From: Fimbriosthenelais zetlandica
Lineage: Eukaryota
DNA length: 64,000 nucleotides
Assembly: GCA_977030845.1 (NCBI GenBank)
Contig: OZ365115.1
Span: forward strand, 10,540,001-10,604,000
Direction of reading: 5' to 3'
Made by a program: the position numbers and the translations under genes. The notes under the pieces are model-generated. The model was given only the letters and a program-made list of their open reading frames with translations, was not told where the DNA came from and searched no databases. Every line of letters starts with the position of its first letter. Positions within the stretch are counted from its first letter, which is position 1. Below, one piece after another: positions 1 to 15,739 of this stretch.

Positions 1-219
1 CAGCTAGAAACCTATGTCTAGAAACTATTATCGTAAGATCTTATGACACTGCTAATGGTGATAGTTAAATAAGTGTTTGAATGTCTCCCCAGCCAAGGTA
101 TTGACAACCATGATGGGCAAAAACGTTATGTGTAATTATTTGTAAGCATATATACATAATATTATATTATATTATATTATATAATATTATCACTAAAATT
201 TATTAACAAATTAACTTAC

Positions 220-3200
220 CAGGATCGTGATTAGTGTCAAAATTAGCCAGTAACCTGACTATACTGACAGGTTGGCTCCAGGAGTTTTCTCTTGCCAATT
301 CCACAAGAAACTCGTTCACATCTGGGCTCTGGATTTCTACAGATTCTGCCCACATACCAATTTCGTAACAGCCCTTCACATAATAGGTGTTTGGGTCCAC
401 ATAGTAACAGTAATCTCCATAGCCAATCCAATCATCAGAACAATTAAACCGCTGGGCTTTTTCATATTTATCTACAAATGGTGAGACAGCTCTTTACATC
501 TGACTTACATTAATGTATAAGGCTAAGACGTGGCATTTCTCCTGTATCGATCTCATGATCGATTAAAAAATAATGATATTCAATTCAGTCCTACGATTAT
601 CATTAGAGTAATTTTACTTTAAGGATTATCATTCAAGCTATATATGCCTACATACTTACAGGCGGGAGCCTTGCATATGAATGTTTCGACTTCACCATAG
701 CCGATATTACATGCTACATCACTCCAGTTCCCATTACTATCCATTATCACACATCCTAAGTCCTTGTGTGAAAGAGAATACTCAATTTGTGAAGAAACTC
801 CAACTTTGGCCCAGACTTACATGTTTATACTCATGAGACACTTAAATTGTTTTGCCGCCATCTTGGATTCCATGATCTTTGAAACTAGTTAGGCTAAAAT
901 CGTAATTCAAATATATTGTTTAGGAACCGGTATGCAAAAGCTTGAAACTTATATACCTTATCATTGCCAGGGCTTCCATATGCCCAGTTGCTGTATGTCA
1001 AAGAGTCTCCATTAGGCCACACGTATTCCAAACCTGAAGGTGTAGACATGCTCTGACGATCATTTCATATTTAGGCTACTTCATATATATATAATTAAGG
1101 AAGGTATGTGTAATAAGAGGTTGGTGGGGACTCAGTTTACAGAAATTAAAAGAAAGGTCCATTCAGGCCTATAATTGTTCTTCATTCCTCTGACTTTCCC
1201 CTTTGAAAATCTAAGAATATTAAGGAAGTTGTTTTAACATATTGATAATCTTACTTCTTTGATTGAGGAATGCTCCAATCCATGTTCTGTAGTTGCCAGT
1301 CATCATGCGTTTTATTAGGTTATTCTCTTCCTCATCGTAGATTGTGACCAGAGTACTGTTGATGCCTACACCCCTACAGTAAGCTTCAGCTTCCCGGCTG
1401 CTCCTTAACCTGCCCCCAACATACATCCTACCATAGCAGTTATCACCGAACATTACCCAGTCAGGCTGGCATCGACCTTAATGAGAGAAAAAAGTTACAA
1501 AAAAGGGGATAATTGGAACTAATAAAATACCCATCCAGAACCAGCTTGAATTTGAAGTTGGTATTTGTCACTCAAATAACTAGGGCCGACCCCTCCATTT
1601 CTACAATACTGGATCTACCCCTGCGACATATCGTACACCTTACAAAAAGGTTAGAATCTGATATGAGCTGACTCGATACAAGAAAAATCAGATGGTTGAG
1701 TCATCATAGGGTTTCTTTCGATCCAAATGGAAATAAAGTAGTTTACGGTTTTCTGGTGTCGACCTGTTCAGGTATACTCGTTCAAACAAACTGTTTTCAG
1801 CATTGTCTGCTGCGATGTAGCAGGTGTACTCTCCAAAATCAGACCAGTCCACACCACTTATCCTCAACATAGATCTAAAGGTGTAATAAAATGATTACAT
1901 CGAGCTAAAATATTCAAAAGAGAGATGCAATAATTATTTTGCTATTGCATTATAGGATTTTGTTAATTTACTTCTATCCCGAATACTTTAGGCAAAAGAA
2001 ACTCCTCAATTCATAACAAGGTACTAGTTTATAAATATCCTTCGTGTTAAAAAATCATGTTAATATTAACTTGTAGAATGGGAAAAAAATCTTTCAAATA
2101 GTTCAATTATTGCCTAGCCTATATATATAAACTTTAAAATTGTAAAAGAAACTGTAATGGCACCCTACAACCCATCAATATTTGATAGTGTTCATTAGGT
2201 TTGGCCTACCTCACGTAATACATGTCTTCTCCATAGAGCTCAACACTCATCCAACTGGGAGCATCCACGGTTCGGTTATTAACAAAGAGAGTCTCGTGAT
2301 ATCCTTGCGTTGTAACCCGTGACCATATTATGCTTGTTTCGTCTTGGCGGTGGTAATAAGTGTAGGCTGAACAATCAAAGTATGCATCTTCGTTGACAGC
2401 CTTTGTCAAGCTCTGTGGTATAGTTCTCCAGTAGATTGGTCCCCCAGGACCTGCAGTTAGGAAGGTTAGACTTTAACTCTTTAAATTCTTAAAATTTAAT
2501 TTCCAAAAATTTCAAGGACCAGATAATCATGAGGAAAGGGGTCATTGATATATGTAACGCTTCGTTCTAGAAGTTGACACCCCCTGCAATACAATAATGC
2601 AATGTTTTACCATTTTGGATGTAAAGCAATGTGTTCTGATGTCAACAGGGGTACAAAATGGAAAAAAGGAACATTTCACAGTAATAAATACAAAGTCCGC
2701 ATCATGCATAATTATTATGCCTGCATGTATGGTCAGTATAATACCCGTCACACAGAAAGGATGATCCGCGCGGGAAACGTCCCATATTCATACAGGGAAT
2801 GGAAATTGGCATTCAACTTTAAATTTAGTCAAGATAGAGGAAGGAATTTGCTACACTTTGGTGAAAAAACCTTTTCAAAATTCCAAGTAGAAGTGAAGAT
2901 GCAGCCTTCCAAAGTTGGCAAGGCAGAAATTTGGGAGAAGCGCTGATTACCCTGAGTATGGCAATTTCTCACCAGAAATATTAGTTTTATACCACTAATC
3001 CCCTTTATTCCAGAAATTATATAATGACACAATTCTTTGATTGTTTTCTTAATCTTTATCCGATTTTTATGAAGTAAACTTTATTTAGGAGATAGGATCA
3101 ACCTTTATAAAAGCATATACACTTTGATTAATGATTCCCCATAAAGCCGTTGCCATAGAAACGGAAAATTCGAATGATATCTATTTTGCCCAAATACAGG

Positions 3201-5991
3201 TAACCAAAAAACAATGATTAAAAATTAATTTTTTGACCAAAATAATATTTTCATTGTATTAAGGGTAAAAAATTATGAAATGTGTATTTTGACAATTTTT
3301 GAACTTTAAATTTAATTTTTTTAATTTTTTGGCCCAAATATTAGACCAAAAAGGGTCGAATTTTCATTATTTTTTCTGAAATTCTCCTATATTCGAACCG
3401 ACATAACTTCTTCCATATGTTAGGCATTGATATAATAGTTACATCGCTGGATTCAGTGAAAGAAGTTTAAAACAGTGATACCCCACATTTGAATCAAAGA
3501 ATACACATTAATATTCATCTGAAGTGTCAAATAATGGTCAAAATGGCTATTTTAAAGGTTGGCTCACTGCCTGAGAACCTCTAGCACTGTCACTCCCATA
3601 GGGATTGGCATTTGAGAGTTATGAATTCATAGACCTCTCAGCACTAAAAATCTCATATCTCAGCAACCAATAGGAATTTTTGAGAAATTCTTTCGATTTC
3701 TGGTTCTCCTGAACCTACTTATCAACAGTCGATACAAAAACCAACATCGGAAATTTGACCCCGGATCATCCTTTCTGTGTGACGGGTCATATATTTTACC
3801 TTCTGTTGTCCATTCTGGCCCGTCAGAATCTATAAGCCTGGCACTGTCATTCAAGCTGTTATGTCCATTGATGGCCTCAATCTCACATATGTATTCTCCA
3901 AAGTCAGAGCTGTTTACACCATTTATATACAGGTACGATCTATAACATATTCAAAGACAGTCACAAACAGGTTCATACTGAAATCTGAAATGTATCAAAT
4001 GACCGGTTGCAATTCGTCCAATGTAACCAAAGGTTAGTTTCCAAAACATCAGGGAATATCAGACCTTTCATGTCAATTATAATGTGATCAGCCTTAAGTG
4101 TTAGTTCAAAATCTATATAATCCTCAAACCATAATGAGCTGTGGACGGTTTTGTTCTTTATACAATGCAAAGAAATATCTCACTGAAAGTAATTATAATC
4201 ATATCCATAGATGCTGACGTCCATCCAGTGTGGGGCATCCTCACGTTGATCATTGGTAAACAGTTTCTCAGTTCTTGAGTCAATCTGCCTTGTCCATGTT
4301 ATGGTTACCTGGTCATTTGGGTGGTAATTGGTGTAAGCTGAACAATAAAATGCTACCCTAACATTAACTGATGCTCTAACATCCTGAGGCCTAAATTTCC
4401 AGGAAATTGGCCCACTTGGACCTGAAACAAGTGCAATAATTAATAAATTGTCCTTTTAATGTTAACAAATAATTCTGAGGGGCACACAATGGAAAAAAGA
4501 GGTAAATTTCACAGTAATAATCACCAAGTCTGCATCATCTGCCTGGTCAGTATATTTTACCTTCTGTTGTCCATTCTGGCCCGTCAGAATCTATAAGTCT
4601 GGCACTGTCATTCAGGCTGTTATGTCCATTGATGGCCTCAATCTCACATATGTATTCTCCAAAGTCAGAGCTGTTTACACCATTTATATACAGGTACGAT
4701 CTATAACATATTCAAAGACAGTCACAAACAGGTTCATACTGAAATCATCAGGGAATATCAGACCTTTCATGTCAATTATAACGTGATCAGCCTTAAGTGT
4801 TAGTTCAAAATCTATATAATCCTCAAACCATAATGAGCTGTGGACGGGTTTTGTTCTTTACAATGCAAAGAAATAACTCACAGAAAGTAAAAATAATCAT
4901 GTCCCCCGATGAGGACGTCCATCCAGTGTGGAGCATCCTCACGTTGATCATTGGTAAACAGTTTCTCAGTTCTTGAGTCAATCTGTCTGGACCATGTTAT
5001 GGTTACCTGGTCATTTGGGTGGTAATTGGTGTAAGCTGAACAATCAAATTTTACCCTAGCATTAACTGATGCTCTAACATCTTGAGGCCTATATCTCCAA
5101 GAAATTTCCCTCCTGGAAAGTCTGGCACTGGCATTCAAGCTGTTATGTCCATTGATGGCCTCAATCTCACATATGTATTTTCCAAAGTCAGAACTTTTCA
5201 CGCCATTAATATCCAACCTTAATCTAGAAAAGAATCACTTGCATAAGTACAAGCACTGTATATTGTAATTGTGATTAATACGCATTCACGTTTTTTACAT
5301 TAAAATGGAACTGCACTTCCTCACCCAAAGTACCAAAAATCATATCCATAGAAGCTGACAGTCATCCAGTTTGGGGCTTCCTCACGTTGACCATTAGTAA
5401 ACAGTTTCTCGGTTCTTGAGCCAATCTGTCTGAACCATGTTATGTTCACATGCTCTTTTTGGTGGTCAGGGGTATAAGCTGAACATTCAAAAAAGGCATC
5501 ACCCTCAACTGATGCTATGAAATTATAGGGTATGGATCTCCAAGAAAGTGGTCCACCAGGACCTAAGAAAGTAAAACACGTTTAAATAGTTTTTTTTTCT
5601 TTTCCGTCAATACTAAACCAGCTGACTGAATTATACTGAATTCGTGCATGAAGCTATGAATAATAAAATTGGATCTTTACCGTCTGTAGCACTACTATTT
5701 CCTGTCCATTCTGGGAGGGCAGTTGTCCACCAGGCACGCTCTGGATTAGAATTCCGCAACTCTTGTGAATTACTCACTTTTCCATTTTCACTCTCGGACC
5801 TTGTGTGTTCAATTGCTGAAACACAATGAAAACGGTCCTTTACTAAGTCATTATATAGAAAACAAACGCAGTATGTTTAGATCCCAAATAACCGTAATGA
5901 GTGACACTCACTGTATTACCAGAAAATAAATCAATTGATATAATTTACCCGAAACCAGCAAGATGAGTAGACAAGCAGCTCCTGGACCCAT
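220..5991 (-). CDS. Secreted 4xIg + 2xC-type lectin protein, copy A (last exon lies left of the window)
   Basis: GT-AG exons with consistent phases: 5949-5991 (signal MGPGAACLLILLVS), 5681-5815, 5325-5562, 4882-5223 (fused), 4561-4700, 4184-4421, 3800-3939, 2210-2450, 1747-1874, 1255-1476, 957-1033, 660-762, 220-471. Ig hallmarks F.CSAY..ITW and DFG.Y.C.I. Lectin hallmarks C.PDW..FGDNCY, W.NGDSLTYSNW, GCV...GNWSDVAC...FICK. Confidence 0.88.
2741..3789. mobile_element. Non-autonomous DNA transposon (MITE-like, about 1.05 kb)
   Basis: Perfect 26-bp terminal inverted repeats ACCCGTCACACAGAAAGGATGATCCG at 2743-2768 and 3762-3787. An empty paralogous site at 4545-4561 (ggtcagtatattttacc) implies a 4-bp AT-rich target duplication. 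AT-rich interior, no transposase ORF. Confidence 0.85.
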
Positions 5992-6048
5992 GTCAAGTCT
6001 ACAACAAATGGCCTTTCACTTTCAGTCAGACAACTGAAACTACGCCAG

Positions 6049-6055
6049 TTATATA
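6049..6055 (-). promoter_or_regulatory. Candidate TATA box of copy A (equivalent at 12823-12829 in copy B)
   Basis: TATATAA on the minus strand about 60 nt upstream of the ATG, conserved in both copies; no transcript evidence. Confidence 0.35.
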
Positions 6056-6645
6056 GCTTGATGTGTAATCTTGCCATGTACATCTGTCAGCTTTCACAAA
6101 CATATTTTAGTCGTTATGCCTAAATTCGTGTTCCGATTAGCACTATAGGAGATTGTAGTATAATGTGATTGGAAGGGACTTGAATTATTCATTTGTGTGT
6201 TCTGTAATCTCAACATCGGAACAGTTTCACAAGAGACATAAAGATATAATTGTACTGGAGCACATAGCATGATTATTAGTTATAGAGTTAAGGCTATGGG
6301 CTAAACCGTTTTCAATGAACCAGACCCCAGCTATTCATGGGAACTGAACAGCCATTTAAGAGGTGGTCAGCATACAGGGAACGCCTTCATTTCGATAACA
6401 CTGGCGGATGGCAAGTTGATATGATATGGAAGGCTAAAGATTATTATTTTGTGTTAAGGCCTAGACGCCTAGGTGGATGTCGGGCTAGGGTTATGGTTAT
6501 AACAATTTAATATCCGTATATTTCACCTCCGCTTTCCTATTCATTTACCTTGTTACTAAATTACGTATACACGATTTAGGGTCTTTGTAATAGTATTCCA
6601 ATCATTGCTTAAACTAAAGCTGAATGGATGACATTTGAGATTAAA

Positions 6646-6651
6646 TTTATT
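6646..6651 (-). terminator. Candidate poly(A) signal of copy B
   Basis: AATAAA on the minus strand about 110 nt after the stop at 6764. Confidence 0.45.
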
Positions 6652-6763
6652 ATGTATGTGGATATGTGTATTGGGGTTGCAACCCTGGTTCACATAATAT
6701 GCTTCCAGTATCGATCATTAAATGATCATTAAATGAATGCAGAAAAAGTCATGTCTTGAGCTG

Positions 6764-9700
6764 TTATTGCTCATCTGAGACCCAGGATGGGCGCCGACAC
6801 ATCGTGCCCATACCGGCGCCGGCTGAGAGTACCGGCCGCCAGGTGCCCGTGGCGAGGTCTAGGTCGATACCACGGACATTGTCCCTCATGTCCACATCCT
6901 CACCAGCTGGGAAGTTCTTATATTGGAAGAAGTCATAGCTAGCGTCCCACCGCCAATCTAGTAAATAACAAGATGTATATATGTTAATAATAAGTATCTT
7001 TTGGGTGCAATTTTTCACTTCCATGTGGATGATCAGGGGTCAGTGTTCTGCTGGCAGTGTGTTAGTGACAGTGTACTGGGGGTATTCTGTTGGCGGTGTA
7101 CTGGGGACAGTGTTCTGTTGGCAGTGCACAGTTCAAATGCCTTGACATTTAATTGGAGTGATTGCAGTCTAATTCTTATGCTTTTACCAGCTAGAAACCT
7201 ATGTCTAGAAACTATTATCGTAAGATCTTATGACACTGCTATTGGTGATAGTTAAATAAGTGTTTGAATGTCTCCCCAGCCAAGGTATTGACAACCATGA
7301 TGGGCAAAAACGTTATGTGTAATTATTTGTAAGCATATACATAATATTATATTATATTATATAATATTATCACTAAAATTTATTAACAAATTAACTTACC
7401 AGGATCGTGATTAGTGTCAAAATTAGCCAGTAACCTGACTACACTGACAGGTTGGCTCCAGGAGTTTTCTCTTGCCAATTCCACAAGAAACTCGTTCACA
7501 TCTGGGCTCTGGATTTCTACAGATTCTGCCCACATACCAATTTCGTAACAGCCCTTCACATAATAGGTGTTTGGGTCCACATAGTAACAGTAATCTCCAT
7601 AGCCAATCCAATCATCAGAACAATTAAACCGCTGGGCTTTTTCATATTTATCTACAAATGGTGAGACAGCTCTTTACATCTGACTTACATTAATGTATAA
7701 GGCTAAGACGTGGCATTTCTCCTGTATCGATCTCATGATCGATTAAAAAATAATGATATTCAATTCAGTTCTACGGTAATCATTAGAGTAATTTTACTTT
7801 AAGGATTATCATTCAAGCTATATATGCCTACATACTTACAGGCGGGAGCCTTGCATATGAATGTTTCGACTTCACCATAGCCGATATTACATGCTACATC
7901 ACTCCAGTTCCCATTACTATCCATTATCACACATCCTAAGTCCTTGTGTCAAGGAGAATACTCAATTTGTGAAGAAACTCCAACTTTGGCCCAGACTTAC
8001 ATGTTTATACTCATGAGACACTTAAATTGTTTTGCCGCCATCTTGGATTTCATGATCTTTGAAACTAGTTAGGCTAAAATCGTAATTCAAATATATTGCT
8101 TAGGAACCGGTATGCAAAAGCTTGAAACTGATATATAGGCTAAAATCGTAATTTAAAATTCAAATATATTGTTTAGGAACCGGTATGCAAAAGCTTGAAA
8201 CTTATATATATTATATACCTTATCATTGCCAGGGCTTCCATATGCCCAGTTGCTGTATGTCAAAGAGTCTCCATTAGGCCACACGTATTCCAAACCTGAA
8301 GGTGTAGACATGCTCTGACGGTCATTTCATATTTAGGCTACTTCATATATAATATAGTTAAGGAAGGTATGTGTAATTAGAGGTTGGTGGGGACTCAGTT
8401 TACAGAAATTAAAAAAAAGGTCCATTCAGGCCTATAATTGTTCTTCATTCCTCTGACTTTCCCCTTTGAAAATCTAAGAATATTAAGGAAGTTGTGTTAA
8501 CTTTTTTTTAAATCTTACTACTTTGGTTGAGGAATGCTCCAATCCATGTTCTGTAGTTGCCAGTCATCATGCGTTTTATTAGGTTATTCTCTTCCTCATC
8601 GTAGATTGTGACCAGAGTACTGTTGATGCCTACACCCCTACAGTAAGCTTCAGCTTCCCGGCTGCTCCTTAACCTGCCCCCAACATACATCCTACCATAG
8701 CAGTTATCACCGAACATTACCCAGTCAGGCTGGCATCGACCTTAATGAGAGAATCCTACACTAAGTCTCACCTCTACATGTCACTTTTGTGACGCAGATC
8801 TCTTTTTAAGTCTTCCCATGATGCCCCAATCATTCATAATTTTAATATTTGTATCGTATCACCTCACCTCTCCTCACTTCACCACAAACCCCCCGACCCC
8901 ACACTGACACCCCCGCCCCCTGGGAGGTTTAACCAAAGGGGAGTGGGGGCGGGGGGGGGGAGGGTTACAAAAAAGGGGAGAATTGCAACTGATAAAATAC
9001 CCATCCTTCCAGAACCTTCTTGAACTTGAAGTTGGTTCTATGTCACTGAAATAACTAGGGCTGACCCCTCCATTTCTACAATCCTGGATCTACCCCTGCG
9101 ACATATCGTACACCATACAAACAGGTGAATCTGATATGAGCTGACTCGATACAAGAAAAATCAGATGGTTGAGTCATCATAGGGTTTCTTTCGATCCAAA
9201 TGGAAATAAAGTAGTTTACGGTTTTCTGGTGTCGACCTGTTCAGGTAAACTCGTTCAAACAAACTGTTTTCAGCATTGTCTGCTGCGATGTAGCAGGTGT
9301 ACTCTCCAAAATCAGACCAGTCCACACCACTAATCCTCAACATAGATCTAAAGGTGTAATAAAATGATTACATCGAGCTAAAATATTCAAAAGAGAGATG
9401 CAATAATTATTTTGCTATTGCATTATAGGATTTTGTTAATTTACTTCTATCCCGAATACTTTAGGCAAAAGAAACTCCTCAATTCATAACAAGGTACTAG
9501 TTTATAAATATCCTTCGTGTTAAAAAATCATTTTAATATTAACTTGTAGATTGGGAAAAAAATCTTTCAAATAGTTACATTATTGCCTAGCCTATATATA
9601 TAAACTTTAAAATTGTAAAAGAAAATGTAATGGTACCCTACAACCCATCAATATTTGATAGTGTTCATTAGGTTTGGCCTACCTCACGTAATACATGTCT

Positions 9701-12700
9701 TCTCCATAGAGCTCAACACTCATCCAACTGGGAGCATCCACGGTTCGGTTATTAACAAAGAGAGTCTCATGATATCCTTGCGTTGTAACCCGTGACCATA
9801 TTATGCTTGTTTCGTCTTGGCGGTGGTAATAAGTGTAGGCTGAACAATCAAAGTATGCATATTCGTTGACAGCCTTTGTCAAGCTCTGTGGTATAGTTCT
9901 CCAGTAGATTGGTCCCCCAGGACCTGCAGTTAGGAAGGTTAAACTTTAACTCTTTAAATCCTTAAAATTTTATTTTCAATAATTTCAAGGACCTGATGAG
10001 GAAAGGGGTCATTGAAATATGTAACGCATTTTTTCTACTTATAAGTTGACACCCCCTGCAATACAATAATGCAATGTTTTACCATTTGGGGCGTAAAGCA
10101 ATGATGTATGCCCCGATACAATGACCACACAATGTTATTTTTTAATGGACCCAAACTTTGTGTTCTGATGTGAACAGTAATCCTAGAAGATTTGTTTCGT
10201 CTATTATTCAATGCTTCAAATTACATATTATATGTGGGAGCCTGCACGAGAATTTTACCTTCTGTTGTCCATTCTGGCCCGTCAGATTCAATAAGTCTGG
10301 CACTGTCATTCAAGCTGTTATGTCCATTGATTGCCTCAATCTCACATATGTATTCTCCAAAGTCAGTGTTGTTCACACTTTTTATTTGCAAGATTGATCT
10401 AGAAATATGTAATGATAATATTAAATAAATCTTGAACAGGTACATCTGGGGTTCCCTTATTAATTGAGAGGTGTACTTATTAATTGAGAGGTCTAATTAA
10501 AAAGTTTAAACGACTGATAAAATCAACCTAAACCTTCTAAAAAGATCTAAAAATGTAAGCAGTGGTCTTGATCTGTTCTTTAAAATGTAACTCATAGTAA
10601 ACTCACAGAAAGTAAGAATAATCATATCCCCCGATGGTGGCATTCATCCAGTGTGGGGCATCCTCACGTCGATCATTGGTAAACAGTTTCTCGGTTCTTG
10701 AGCCAATCTGCCTTGTCCATGTTATTGTTACCTGGTCATTTGGGTGGTAATAGGTGTAAGCTGCACAATCAAATTTTACCCTATCATTGACTGATGCTTT
10801 GACATCTTGAGGCCCATAGTACCAATAAATTGGCCCACTTGGATCTGAAACAAGTGCCATAATTAATACATTATAAATTGTCCTTTTAATGTTAACCACT
10901 TATTCTGAGGGATATTAAATGTATAAAAGAAGACCTGTAAATTTCACAGTGATAATCACCAAGTCTCTATTATCTGCCTGTATGGTCAGTATTTTACCTT
11001 CTGTTGTCCATTCTGGCCCGTCATATTCTATAAGTATGGCACTGTAATTCAAGCTGTTATGCGCATTGCGGGCCTCAATCTCACATATGTATTCTCCAAA
11101 GTCAGAGCTGTTTACTCTTTGTATATACAAGTACGATCTAGAACATATTCAATGACAGTCACGAACAGGAGATAACAGGTTCATACTGAAATCTGAATTT
11201 TTTACAATGACCGGTGGCACTTCGTCCAATGTAACCAAAGGTTCAGGGAATATCAGGCCTGTTCTTTATAATGCAAAGAAATAACTCACTCAAAGTAAGA
11301 ATAATCACGTCCATAGATGCTGGCGTCCATCCAATGTGGAGCATCCTCACGACGGTCATTGGTAAACAGTTTCTCAGTTCTTGAGTCAATCTGTCTGGAC
11401 CATGTTATGGTTACCTGGTCATTTGGGTGGTAATACGTGTAAGCTGAACAATCAAATGTTACCCAATCATTAACTGATGCTCTAACATCTTGAGGCCTAT
11501 ATCTCCAAGAAATGTCCCCACTTGGATCTGAAACAAACTAGTGCAATAATTAATCAATTTTCCTTTTAACGTTAACAACTAATCCTAGGGGTATAAAATG
11601 GAAAAAAGAATGTCAATTTCACAGTGATAATCACAAAGTCTGCATCATATTATGCCTACATGTATGGACAGTATATATTTTACCTTCTGTTGTCCATTCT
11701 GGCCCGTCAGATTCAATAAGTCTGGCACTGTCATTCAAGCTGTTATGTCCATTGATGGCCTCAACCTCACATATGTATTCTCCAAAATCAGAGCTGCTCA
11801 CGCCATTAATATTCAACATTGATCTAGAAAAGAATCACTTGCATAAGTACAAGAACTGTATTTATATTGAAATTGTGAGCAAAAAGTCAATTCGATATTA
11901 TATTCGACTAATATGCACGCATTAACATGGAACTGCACTTCCTCACCCAAAGTAATAATAATCATATCCATAGAAGCTGACGGTCATCCAGTATGGGGCT
12001 TCCTCACGTTGACTGTTAGTGAACAGTTTCTCGGTTCTTGAGCCAATCTGTCTGAACCATGTTATGTTCACATGCTCTTTTTGGTGGTCAGGGGTATAAG
12101 CTGAACATTCAAAATAAACATAATCCTGAACTGATGCTCTGACGTCATAGGGTCTGTATCTCCAAGAAAGTGATCCACCAGGACCTAAAAAAGTAAAACA
12201 CGTTTAATATTTTATTCTTTCTTTTCCCGTCAATACTAAATCAGTTGACTGAATTAGTGATTTCGTACATGAAGTTATGAATAATAAAATTGGATCTTTA
12301 CCGTCTGTAGCACTACTATTTTCTGTCCATTCTGGGACGGCAGTTGTCCACCAGGCACGCTCTGGATTAGAATTCTTCAACTCTTGTGAATTACTCACTT
12401 GTCCATTTTCACTCTCGGACCTTGTATGTTCTATAGCTGAAAATGTCACCATTCGTGAAAACAATTGCAAAATATAAGATATTCGTTACATTGAAATGTT
12501 CAAAGCAATGCTGCACCAACAATAGGCCGCATTATTGTTTGATGTTCAGTGGATCCTCTTACATAGCAATCTAAACACTATCGACAGACACACAATGAAA
12601 ACGGTCCTTTTACTAAGTCATTATATAGAAAACACACGCAGTAATCTAGATCCCAAATAACCGTAATGAGTGAAACTCACTGTATTACCAGAAAATAAAT

Positions 12701-12760
12701 CAATTGATATAATTTACCCGAAACCAGCAAGATGAGTAGAGAAGCAGCTCCTGGACCCAT
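6764..12760 (-). CDS. Secreted 4xIg + 2xC-type lectin protein, copy B (complete, about 842 aa, 15 exons)
   Basis: Exons 12718-12760, 12302-12436, 11947-12184, 11684-11823, 11290-11527, 10998-11137, 10607-10844, 10259-10398, 9683-9923, 9220-9347, 8519-8740, 8219-8295, 7840-7942, 7400-7651, 6764-6957. Sum is 2529 nt (843 codons), phases are consistent, ends ...CRRPSWVSDEQ*. No transmembrane segment seen. Confidence 0.9.
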
Positions 12761-13571
12761 GTCAAGTCTTCTATACAACAAATGTCCTTTCACGTTCAGT
12801 CAGACAACTGAAACTACGCCAGTTATATAGCTCGATGTGTAATCTTGCCATGTATACATATGTCAGCGTTCACAAAATTTTTGTATTCGTTATGCTTAAA
12901 TTCGTGTTCCGATTAGCACTATAGGAGATTGTAGGATAATGTGATTGGAAGGGACTTATTTTTTGTGTGTTCTGTAATCTCAACATCGGAACAGTTTCAC
13001 AAGAGACATAAAGATATAATTGTACTGGAGCACATAGCATGATTATTAGTTATAGAGTTAGTAGGCTATGGGCTAAACCGTTTTCAATGAAACAGACCCC
13101 AGCTATTCATGGGAACTGAACAGCCATTTAAGAGCTGGTCAGCATACAGGGAACGCCTTCATTTCGATAACACTGGCGGATGACAAATTGATATGATATG
13201 GAAGGCTAAAGATTATTATTTTGTGTTAGTAAACATAAACATGTACATTTAGACTACACTTAGAATAATTCACCTGCATTAAACCATGATACTCAGGGGC
13301 GAAGGAAACAGGGGGCACAGGGGCTATGGTCCCCTACCACAGAATTTGGGAGGCACAGTGCCCCCACCCCACCCCATCTCCAACCCCAACACCAATCAGT
13401 ACTATTAACTTGTCATAATTCATCGGAATTGCCCTCCGATTAATATTGAAAAAAATATTTAGGTCCCTCCGCACTCCCCTCAGAAACTCAAATGACAAAA
13501 ACACAACGCCCAACTCAAGACTGCTATAGGCCGAAAAAATATGTCGTGATCCAGGGAAAAGCGACTTACAA

Positions 13572-13636: not shown

Positions 13637-15739
13637 CACAGGTAAGTCTACTACATCCCCACACATTTAGCCTGAACCGACCAGGACAAGTATTTATAAT
13701 TATTTCGCCCCCGGGCCCCCTCCCTGGCCCCAATCTCCACCCCAATCCCCATGTCTATCCCTAGAACTCCCTTCAAAACCACCAGCCCGATTCGAAACGG
13801 CTAACCTGTTAAAATTCCTTGGAATAGCCCACTCTGTAGGTACTGCCCATAGGCTCCAATGTTAAAAAATATTTAGCCCCCCGGACCCCTCCCCGGCCCC
13901 CAACCTCCACCCCAACCCCCATGTCCAACCCCATCACCCATCCCAACACCCTCCTAAAAATTCAGCCCGATCCTATGCTTTTAACCCATCTAAATCCCTT
14001 GAATTCATCAAAAGTGTCCCGCCCATAGGCTCAATGTTAAAAGTCACTCACGATTACAGGAATGTGTTCCACAGAGCCGGTTTGCTAGCCCACACCAATC
14101 GGCTCTTTCTCTACTTGATATGTATTATTTTCACTCGAAACGACGGTTCTGTATGACTTATGATCTCTACTGATAAATATCAAAAGAGCAGAGACGTAAA
14201 ACGAGGATAACACCGATTTCTGCGATATTGCAAATCGGCCTTACGTATACCGGCCTATAATTTGGCCTTTTAAAAACCTTAACAGCGCCCTCTCAGTAAA
14301 AGTCTAAAAAGTTGAATAACTCTGTAAATAATGGGTCTAAAATTACAATTCAAACGGATTATTCTTAGTTGGGAGATCCTTCAGATGTCTATGTGGTTTT
14401 TGTTCCAATAAAATTTGTTTAAAATTTCTGATTTTCAAAATGGCCTGAATTTCTTCATTTAGCATTGGAGTCAATGGAAGGAGGCGGCCGAGCGCATGTG
14501 GCGACCCGAGATGCCGTTGCGGCGAAAACGTGAACTACTATAGCCTACGGCAGCCAGCATAGTAGAATCTTAGAGCATGGCCTGTGTGACAAGCCTCGCC
14601 TTCCAGCCGGGATAGAGACTTGGGGCTCAGGGCCTAGGTGGATGTCGGGCGTTGGATCGGGTGGTGGTTGGGGGGGGGGGGGGGGGTGGGGGGGGGGGGG
14701 GGCAGGACAAAATAAAAGAACAAAGTCTAAAACCCGTAGGCCTATAAGCCTAAATGTTAATTTTGCCCTCAATCCCACCACCAATCTTACTCACTCCTCA
14801 TACCCCGAATCCCAAGTATTATCCCACTCCACTCCTATAAGGCCTATAGCCAGGGCAGGAATAGGTATCATTCGCTTGATCATAGTAATGTAGTTCATCT
14901 TTTTGCCGCTGCTAATCTCGAGCCCCAAGTTGTTCCCGGCTGGAAAGCGAGTTTTTTTTATTCAGGCTATATGCTGGCTTGTACATGGTAGTTCACGTTT
15001 TCGCCGCTAGGGCATCTCGGGTCGCCACATGCGCTCGGCCGCCTGCTTCCATTGACTCCAATGCTAAATGAAGAAATTCAGTCCATTTTGAAAATCAGAA
15101 ATTTTAAACGAATTTTATTGGAACAAAAATCACATAGACATATGACACGTCTCCCAACTAAGAATAATCCATTTGAATTGTAATTTTAGACCCATTATTT
15201 ACAAAGTTATTCAACTTTTTCGACATTTAGTGAGAGGGCGCTGTTAAGGTTTTTAAAAGGCCAAATTATAGGCCGGTATACGCAAGGCCGATTGGTCAAC
15301 TTCTTAGAAATCGGTGTTATCCTCGTTTTGCGTCTCTGCTCTTTTGATATTTATCAGTAGAGGTCATAAGTCATGGATAACCGTGGTTTCGAGTGAAAAT
15401 AACAGATATTAATAGAGAAGGAGCCGATTGGAGTGGACTGGCAAACCGGCTCTGTAGCACACATCCATGTAATCGTGAGTGACTTTTAACATTGAGCCTA
15501 TGGGAGGGACACTTTTGCTGAATTCAAGGGATTTAGACAGGTTAGAAGCAACGAATCGAGCTGACATTTTGGGAGGGAGTTTGGGTGGGTGCTGGGGGTA
15601 GACATGGGGGTTTGGATGGAGGTTGGGGGCCGGGGAGGGGTCCGGGGGCTAATTTTTTTTTAACATTGGAGCCTATGGGCAGTACCTACACAATAGGCGG
15701 TCCAGGCTAAATTTGAAGGGTGTGGTATACGGACCTGTG

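Follow-up and report, generated by a model that had tools for sequence, protein, structure and literature searches.

Two intact genes, A and B, lie head to tail on the minus strand of the 64,000-nucleotide stretch of contig OZ365115.1 analyzed here (the window), and each is predicted to encode a secreted protein in which four V-like immunoglobulin (Ig) modules precede two C-type lectin-like domains (CTLDs). The genes are recent duplicates, and the pair is not a large diversified repertoire. We found this secreted layout of four Ig modules and two CTLDs in no paper and in no protein of a library of 1.84 billion representative proteins, in agreement with an earlier suggestion, made from the letters of the DNA (the sequence-only reading), that the architecture may be undescribed. 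We tentatively regard the pair as a soluble, opsonin-like Ig-lectin recognition or bridging protein, with humoral defense as its most likely setting, an explanation that we prefer while placing it somewhat short of an even chance.

Gene models and copy number

Both gene models have GT-AG junctions and open frames. Gene B runs from 12760 to 6764 in 14 exons and encodes 797 aa; its second Ig4 exon uses the sole donor that gives an open frame into CTLD1. Gene A encodes 785 aa and runs from 5991 to 220 in the window, with its last exon beyond the left edge (Table 1). The second half of Ig1 and the first half of Ig2 are fused into one exon in gene A because an in-frame deletion took out the intron together with 12 codons. 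Each gene has a conserved TATA box of its own, 64-69 nt upstream, and a poly(A) signal past its stop codon. The sequence-only reading had proposed a protein of 842 aa, a length that neither model has, and an interval of 220-12760 that covers both genes but misses the last exon of gene A. At CTLD1 exon 1, where gene A uses a GTAAG donor, the GT that gene B has three bases upstream of this donor reads GA in gene A.

Table 1. Features of genes A and B in window coordinates; negative numbers lie left of the window.
Feature	Position	Strand	Remark
Gene A TATA box	~6055	-	
Gene A exon 1, signal peptide	5949..5991	-	
Gene A Ig1 first exon	5325..5562	-	
Gene A fused exon, Ig1 second half and Ig2 first half	4882..5223	-	
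Gene A Ig2 second exon	4561..4700	-	98.6% identity to gene A Ig3 second exon
Gene A Ig3 first exon	4184..4421	-	
Gene A Ig3 second exon	3800..3939	-	
Dispersed repeat, ~1.04 kb	2743..3780	.	short terminal inverted repeats; in gene A Ig3/Ig4 intron
Gene A Ig4 first exon	2210..2450	-	
Gene A Ig4 second exon	1747..1874	-	
Gene A CTLD1 exon 1	1255..1476	-	GTAAG donor
Gene A CTLD1 exon 2	957..1033	-	
Gene A CTLD1 exon 3	660..762	-	
Gene A CTLD2 exon 1	220..471	-	
Gene A last exon (CTLD2 exon 2)	-231..-424	-	contig 10539577-10539770; 231-424 bp left of window
Gene B TATA box TATATAA	12823..12829	-	69 nt upstream of ATG
Gene B exon 1	12718..12760	-	ATG at 12760, signal peptide, phase-1 donor
Gene B Ig1 first exon	11947..12184	-	strands A to D
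Gene B Ig1 second exon	11684..11823	-	strands E to G and linker
Gene B Ig2 first exon	11290..11527	-	
Gene B Ig2 second exon	10998..11137	-	
Gene B Ig3 first exon	10607..10844	-	
Gene B Ig3 second exon	10259..10398	-	
Gene B Ig4 first exon	9683..9923	-	
Gene B Ig4 second exon	9220..9347	-	exon end ACC, donor GTAAAC
Gene B CTLD1 exon 1	8519..8740	-	C0, C0', C1, WIGAF motif
Gene B CTLD1 exon 2	8219..8295	-	SPG at EPN/QPD position
Gene B CTLD1 exon 3	7840..7942	-	C2, WSD, C3, C4
Gene B CTLD2 exon 1	7400..7651	-	
Gene B CTLD2 exon 2	6764..6957	-	with TAA stop
Gene B AATAAA signal	6646..6651	-	112 nt past stop

Self-BLAST paired window positions 1-6456 with 7188-13228 at 86-98% identity and a period of ~7.19 kb, and unique sequence joins the two copies. 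A search of the whole 447-Mb genome confined each exon type to genes A and B, giving exactly two copies. We looked for a third copy in the left flank of gene A and found none, and neither the window nor this flank contains N gaps. The claim of at least two head-to-tail copies is thus upheld by the self-BLAST and the two gene models; the idea that the array may extend to the left failed, and the words "family" and "array" do not fit a genome-wide paralogue count of two. The left neighbor of the pair is a PI3K gene, and no immune-gene neighborhood was found there. The ~1.04-kb dispersed repeat is private to gene A, the insertion being absent from gene B.

Ig modules and C-type lectin-like domains

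The predicted proteins begin with M-G-P-G-A-A followed by a hydrophobic core of 7-8 residues, a putative signal peptide recognized by eye and from hydropathy. The maximum Kyte-Doolittle 19-residue mean (1.39) falls at this N-terminus, and because the core is the sole hydrophobic stretch in each protein, no membrane segment is predicted. The protein would be of ~90 kDa, acidic and tyrosine-rich, with 11-13 N-glycosylation sequons, and the cysteine count of gene B is even. Signal peptide, Ig modules and CTLDs take up the whole coding length, and link, EGF, CCP, FN3 and collagen modules are absent from that length in either gene. Gene models, domain matches and hydropathy together support what had been proposed for the protein, namely a signal peptide, four two-exon Ig modules, two lectin domains and secretion without a transmembrane segment; the two-exon pattern is broken by the fused exon of gene A.

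Each Ig module of 126 aa is encoded by an exon of 238 or 241 nt and a second of 140 or 128 nt, with phase 1 at both module boundaries. The alignment of the eight modules shows in every one the B-strand Cys, the C-strand Trp and a D-F-G-x-Y-x-C motif, which fits the F-strand pattern D-x-G-x-Y-x-C. Pfam scans were run on ORFs and exons: the ORF spanning the second half of Ig1 and the first half of Ig2 scored 29.7 bits for V-set (cut-off 26) and 24.9 bits for I-set (cut-off 23.7), and single Ig first exons fell below the cut-off. Whole modules aligned across the exon junction to single Ig domains, the best being a full V-set domain of P0058. By these sequence criteria, the modules belong to the immunoglobulin superfamily and are of V/I-set type.

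CTLD1 is, from its sequence, a clear C-type lectin-like domain. Its exon 1 alone matches Pfam Lectin_C at 24.0 bits (cut-off 22.6), PDB sequence matches include DEC-205, PLA2R, NKG2D and CLEC10A, and the translation contains C0, C0', C1-C4 and WIGAF, as in the six-cysteine long form. CTLD2 appears to be a very diverged second CTLD. The top PDB matches of its exon 1 are all CTLDs at marginal E values of 0.03-0.06, this exon matches CTLD1 by BLASTP with E=1e-4, and the language-model neighbors of both CTLD2 halves are Lectin_C clusters; Pfam gave no match to CTLD2, and its last exon has no PDB sequence match.

At the canonical EPN-or-QPD/WND positions, assigned by pattern rather than structure, CTLD1 carries SPG/WSD. 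CTLD2 has only four cysteines (C0, C0', C1 and C4), so that the C2-C3 disulfide is missing, and no recognizable Ca2+ site. Because of these features, sugar binding is not predicted by the canonical rule. Working bivalve lectins can carry WSD and odd first motifs (PMC12842671), and CTLD1 may therefore still bind sugar.

Divergence between the two copies

The differences between genes A and B are concentrated in Ig1-3, with 89.5 nonsynonymous and 30.5 synonymous changes (dN/dS 0.72). The copies differ by 9-17% there, and their intron sizes differ too. The 3' halves are 95-99% identical; from Ig4 through CTLD2 we counted 5 amino-acid differences in 405 codons (dN/dS 0.21). Ig4 and both CTLDs are near-identical between the copies and under purifying selection. 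Synonymous sites and introns are 6-fold more diverged in the Ig1-3 region, where dS is 0.15 as compared to 0.025 in the 3' half and intron identity 83% as compared to 98%.

Within Ig1-3, variation falls in the A, D and E strands, whereas the B-C-C'-C'' and F-G regions are conserved, with strands assigned from sequence patterns; the would-be CDR-like loops (B-C, C'-C'' and F-G) are thus among the conserved stretches. The variable segments, which were chosen post hoc, have a dN/dS of 1.13, not significantly above 1, and the conserved segments one of 0.41 (p=0.007 for <1). Immediately ahead of the exon junction inside the module is a variable patch rich in tyrosine.

The second exons of Ig2 and Ig3 in gene A are 98.6% identical and their introns 96% identical, and both of these modules are nearest to Ig2 of gene B. 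The middle Ig modules evolve as whole two-exon cassettes of 378 nt, running from phase 1 to phase 1, that are exchanged and duplicated. The locus is thus recombining, as had been claimed. The accompanying term "diversifying" is not sustained by the dN/dS values: since synonymous sites and introns of Ig1-3 have diverged as well, and dN/dS is 0.72 overall and ~1.1 in the variable strands, the pattern points to module exchange and relaxed constraint rather than to demonstrated positive selection.

Relatives and possible functions

Our library search returned only generic multi-Ig proteins of at most 36% identity and no protein combining Ig with CTLD. Among the 83 nearest Ig relatives there was no CTLD and no CREP- or FREP-like protein, and Pfam listed no fibrinogen domain among the nearest Ig relatives scanned. 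CREPs, which belong to the gastropod VIgL proteins, are defined as having, behind a signal peptide, one or two IgSF domains and then a single lectin domain at the C-terminus (PMC10875847, PMC5433772), and in snail plasma they bind parasite surface proteins (PMC5433772). They share with the pair secretion, the order of N-terminal IgSF and C-terminal C-type lectin domains, and lineage-specific tandem or multi-copy genes. They differ in having fewer domains than the four V-like Ig modules and two CTLDs found here, in numbering 4-11 genes per snail genome beside dozens of FREPs, and in their mollusc hosts, ours being a probable annelid. The pair is therefore not a member by definition, as the contrast drawn with mollusc VIgL proteins had implied, and because the 83 relatives include nothing CREP- or FREP-like, the likeness to CREPs, compared here by description, probably reflects similar design rather than common descent.

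The best working model for the proposed mechanism is PcLec3 of the crayfish Procambarus clarkii, a secreted protein of Ig and CTLD domains only, whose CTLD binds bacteria and whose Ig binds haemocytes, which promotes phagocytosis (PMC4944128). At 252 aa it is smaller, and it has a single Ig and a single CTLD (PMC4944128). No sequence relationship between PcLec3 and the pair was detectable in the searches made. The immulectins of Lepidoptera have two tandem CTLDs. These dual-CTLD proteins (mentioned in PMC5117596, PMC10312389) are likewise secreted and their motifs are often non-canonical, but they are confined to insects and lack the Ig modules that precede the CTLDs here. VCBPs of protochordates, humoral mediators at the gut surface, join two V domains to a chitin-binding domain (PMC4757023); they too are secreted and combine V-type Ig domains with a carbohydrate-directed domain at the C-terminus, but they lack CTLDs. 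VCBPs form a polymorphic multigene family in which it is the V domains that vary. CTLD and Ig also occur together in other extracellular proteins, among them the vertebrate lecticans, a Drosophila CTL that has several Ig and FN3 domains, and BSCLT of Botryllus, in which the CTLD comes before the Ig (PMC4944128). These have another domain order or extra modules (link, EGF, CCP, FN3) absent here. We rejected lectican identity, since lecticans combine N-terminal Ig and link with C-terminal EGF, CTLD and CCP. In our reading, the pair is a lineage-restricted Ig-lectin chimera that arose by convergent assembly, outside the families of snail CREPs and crayfish PcLec3.

If the pair has the recognition role that we prefer, the protein would be a soluble extracellular molecule that serves in bridging or recognition. 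Fixed partners would be held by two conserved parts of it: the CTLD pair, probably in a non-canonical way, and the B-C-C'-C'' and F-G regions of the Ig modules. The variable A, D and E strands of Ig1-3 could then drift or diversify freely. The role in humoral defense is modeled on PcLec3 and the snail CREPs, with which the pair would share its two domain types by convergence. A distinctly possible, if on balance doubtful, alternative is a non-immune extracellular protein, either a component of matrix, adhesion, mucus, tube or cuticle or a fast-evolving reproductive protein of gamete recognition. Its CTLDs would have protein or mineral as ligand in place of microbial sugar, with the Ig array as a spacer or adhesion rod. 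Neither CTLD has the canonical EPN/QPD and WND set, and many CTLDs have ligands other than sugar (PMC7618208, PMC12842671). The two copies, the acidic and tyrosine-rich protein and the housekeeping neighbor on the left side (PI3K) also fit such a role, and a dN/dS partly near 1 with no detectable orthologues is typical of reproductive or secretory lineage-specific proteins too. However, matrix-type modules are absent from a coding length filled by Ig and CTLD, and where the function of a soluble Ig-plus-lectin chimera has been tested, it is mostly an immune one (PMC4944128, PMC5433772, PMC4757023).

We consider it quite unlikely that the genes form a diversifying, recombining immune-recognition family like FREPs or CREPs with Ig1-3 under positive selection. 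The clustering of mostly nonsynonymous differences in Ig1-3, the dN/dS of the variable strands, the module exchange visible within the genes and the position of the tyrosine-rich patch would all agree with it, but there are only two genes, dN/dS does not significantly exceed 1 and the CDR-like stretches are the conserved ones. Moreover, dS and intron divergence rise together in the same region, so that much of the pattern is accounted for by the history of mutation or exchange and not by selection. Very improbable, too, are the readings that the assembly created the second copy, through a collapsed or duplicated haplotype, or that one or both genes are unexpressed relics. The identity of the 3' halves is within the allelic divergence of some marine invertebrates, and gene A has a fused exon and an intronic transposon; against this stand the gap-free sequence of window and left flank, the divergence of Ig1-3, the unequal intron sizes, the private transposon and the unique joining sequence, as well as intact frames, splice sites and promoters in both genes and the purifying selection visible on the 3' half.

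A broader proposal, which we rate as unlikely, is that the annelid lineage independently assembled a soluble Ig-plus-lectin recognition molecule whose three N-terminal V-like modules diversify by germline cassette swapping. A VIgL-like design would then extend beyond the molluscs, crustaceans and tunicates in which Ig-plus-lectin-type proteins are described. Variation would sit on the ABED face (A, D and E strands), the CTLD pair would be fixed as effector or anchor end, and two-exon cassettes would swap within and between the two genes.

Two head-to-tail genes

The window DNA is AT-rich, animal and free of gaps. Comparing the window with itself revealed a tandem duplication that repeats at an interval of about 7.19 kb. 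The copies agree best in the 3′ part (95–98% identity) and at the 5′ end (94%) and less in the middle (83–92%), and all coding signal is on the minus strand. Using GT-AG junctions, open frame and agreement across the repeated Ig modules and both copies, we built a splice model, sequence-based only, of two head-to-tail genes, A and B, each predicted to encode a secreted protein with four Ig modules (Ig1 to Ig4) and two C-type lectin-like domains (CTLD1 and CTLD2). The 842-aa product proposed in the sequence-only reading is corrected to the lengths in the table below. The span assigned there, 220-12760, does take in both genes, except that the last exon of gene A lies outside the window.

Features of the tandem locus and its surroundings (window coordinates; negative values lie left of the window start)
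Feature	Position	Strand	Description
PI3K gene exons	about -11500 to -4280	plus	catalytic-loop exon GDRHNDNIM...HIDFG
Gene A, last exon	-231..-424	minus	taken from genome sequence
Gene A	5991 to 220 in window	minus	785 aa
Gene B	12760 to 6764	minus	14 exons, 797 aa
Tandem duplication, copies	1-6456; 7188-13228		
Open stretch in intron 1 of genes A and B	5634-5876; 12207-12485	minus	shared open stretch
Dispersed repeat	2743-3780		gene A, Ig3/Ig4 intron
Insertion	8753-8964		gene B, Ig4/CTLD1 intron
Inverted repeat, arms	13835-14565; 14967-15690		upstream of gene B

The duplicated unit takes in about 470 bp of promoter; a TATATAA box is kept 64-69 nt upstream of the ATG in both genes, and poly(A) signals lie past both stop codons. 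An in-frame deletion in gene A, which took out an intron and 12 codons, has joined the second Ig1 exon to the first Ig2 exon. We also considered a broken donor (GT to GA) at CTLD1 exon 1 of gene A and rejected it as a defect; a GTAAG donor 3 nt downstream is common to both genes, stronger and in the same phase as the upstream GT. Genes A and B also have in common an open stretch in intron 1, about 80-90 codons long and without relation to Ig or CTLD; it is probably an old repeat or exon relic, and the gene model does not need it.

When the whole 447-Mb assembly was searched in six frames with four different exons, each exon type turned up in genes A and B only. Together with the self-comparison, this search bears out the earlier claim of at least two head-to-tail copies and fixes their number at exactly two, too few for the family that had been proposed. 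It had also been suggested that the array may extend leftward, but a third copy was rejected there: the 15 kb to the left contain only the last exon and 3′ flank of gene A, followed by exons of a PI3K gene, which ends about 3.8 kb from the gene A stop codon. The C-terminal PI3K exons resemble a C2 domain by eye, and the features of this left-hand gene suggest a class II PI3K.

A 730-bp inverted repeat, its arms 90% identical, lies just upstream of gene B and is a possible foldback element; the low-complexity, G/C-rich sequence flanking it yields poly-Pro or poly-Gly on translation.

Ig modules and lectin domains

Exon 1 encodes a short signal peptide, whose hydrophobic core is the sole hydrophobic stretch in either protein; the proteins therefore have no membrane anchor. 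They are acidic overall, with 8% tyrosine and 11-13 N-glycosylation sequons. Each of the four Ig modules is 123-126 aa long and consists of a 238/241-nt exon followed by a 140/128-nt exon. With phase 1 at the start and end of each module, duplication or exchange of a module leaves the reading frame intact. All eight modules show the residues typical of Ig domains, namely B-strand Cys, C-strand Trp and D-F-G-x-Y-x-C. Domain searches were made with exon-by-exon sequences, and Pfam returned V-set and I-set above cut-off in a single ORF covering parts of two modules. Whole modules, exon junction included, each match one Ig domain, the best match being a full V-set domain.

CTLD1 scores above the Pfam cut-off for Lectin_C from its exon 1 alone, and its PDB matches include DEC-205, PLA2R, NKG2D and CLEC10A. 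With six cysteines and a WIGAF motif, its sequence is clearly that of a long-form CTLD, carrying SPG and WSD at the positions of EPN or QPD and WND in sugar-binding CTLDs. CTLD2 is much more diverged: exon 1 gave only marginal matches, all of them to CTLDs, and reached E=1e-4 when compared with CTLD1; the last exon gave zero sequence matches, and the C2-C3 disulfide is absent. Both halves nevertheless adjoin Lectin_C clusters in a protein language model, and we regard CTLD2 as a probable CTLD. The exon models and hydrophobicity thus uphold the layout first proposed, with signal peptide, four Ig and two lectin domains and no transmembrane segment, the second lectin domain being the less certain part.

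Divergence between the copies and module exchange

Genes A and B encode intact secreted Ig-plus-CTLD proteins whose C-terminal half is strongly constrained. Across Ig4 and both CTLDs, only 5 of 405 residues differ between the copies (dS 0.025, dN/dS 0.21). For Ig1-3 the values are dS 0.15, dN 0.11 and dN/dS 0.72; synonymous sites are six-fold more diverged here, so that the excess is not limited to replacement sites. Intron identity between the genes is 83% inside Ig1 and 98% inside Ig4.

Modules pair one-to-one at the ends of the genes (A1 with B1, A4 with B4), whereas A2 and A3 both have B2 as their nearest module. A2 and A3 are 98.6% identical in the second exon and 96% in the intron, and we therefore conclude that whole cassettes have been copied within genes since the duplication. 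Within modules, two blocks of alignment columns carry the variation: 1-25, from the A strand into B, and 69-91, which covers strands D and E and includes a tyrosine-rich patch; the predicted B-C, C'-C'' and F-G loop stretches are conserved. Pooled dN/dS of the variable segments was 1.13, not above 1 in a binomial test and a generous value because the segments were picked after the alignment was seen. The conserved segments gave 0.41 (p=0.007 for <1). Tests for positive selection by the Nei-Gojobori method gave no domain or segment with dN/dS significantly above 1. In our reading the pattern reflects cassette exchange together with a relaxation of constraint on one sheet, and the variable segments may possibly be under positive selection. 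Of the recombining and diversifying array first proposed, module exchange is visible in A2 and A3, and diversification under selection found no significant support.

Each gene also carries an insertion missing from the other. The one in gene B, about 200 bp long with a C-rich/G-rich palindromic core, accounts for the chief indel in the 3′ halves, which are otherwise 95-98% identical. The dispersed repeat of gene A is about 1.04 kb long with terminal inverted repeats of roughly 30 bp. Among 499 first-look candidates it has at least 46 further genomic matches (about 40 full- or part-length copies) at up to 99% identity, and thus resembles a non-autonomous DNA transposon with recent activity.

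Relatives and possible function

An exhaustive HMMER search with a 118-aa Ig ORF against 1.84 billion representative proteins returned 83 matches, all at ≤36% identity over the matched stretches bar one, which reached 52% over a short 20-residue stretch only. Those scanned with Pfam proved to be multi-Ig or Ig-FN3 proteins of a generic kind, and a domain resembling CTLD1 or CTLD2 is absent from all 83. A close orthologue with four Ig domains and two CTLDs is therefore absent from that library, which evidently lacks this genome's own proteins, and an Ig query could miss relatives recognisable only by the CTLD end. A homologue search with CTLD2 exon 1 found zero candidates sharing words, a result of little weight as it covered proteins of 53-168 aa. 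In the literature searched, neither a protein with 4 Ig domains and 2 CTLDs nor an Ig-CTLD lectin from an annelid was described. The suggestion that the architecture is undescribed has thus held up, and the layout was probably assembled independently.

Secreted Ig-plus-lectin chimeras are a classic case of invertebrates reinventing recognition molecules, as in snail FREPs and CREPs, crayfish PcLec3 and protochordate VCBPs. If immune, the A/B pair would be an annelid example, larger and different in architecture and independently assembled, and would offer a small, tractable two-gene system for the shuffling of Ig modules as phase-compatible exon cassettes. We infer that the two proteins may act as soluble extracellular bridging or recognition molecules. 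The best tested model is PcLec3, which promotes phagocytosis by binding bacteria through its CTLD and haemocytes through its Ig domain (PMC4944128); plasma binding of parasite proteins is described for snail CREPs (PMC5433772).

Nearly as likely as such an immune role is a non-immune secreted one, in matrix, mucus or tube, or reproduction, which would make the pair simply a lineage-specific secreted protein. The housekeeping neighbours, the copy number of only two and the non-canonical CTLD motifs all speak against the immune reading. The motif argument is tempered by reviews, in which lophotrochozoan CTLs are reported to be capable of sugar binding despite WSD and unusual first motifs; CTLDs also have many non-sugar ligands (PMC12842671, PMC7618208). 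To call the pair a diversifying immune system goes beyond the present data and is not justified.

Among known systems, insect immulectins carry a tandem pair of CTLDs, as the A/B proteins do; lecticans have extra modules, none of which is found here. The VIgL family was reportedly defined by Dheilly et al. in 2015. CREPs and other VIgLs are gastropod proteins that combine a signal peptide with one or two IgSF domains and a single lectin domain, the CREPs being encoded by 4-11 genes alongside dozens of FREPs (PMC10875847). The A/B pair differs in domain numbers, copy number and nearest Ig relatives, and is not a member of this family. With VCBPs it shares the design of V-type Ig plus a sugar-directed domain (PMC4757023).
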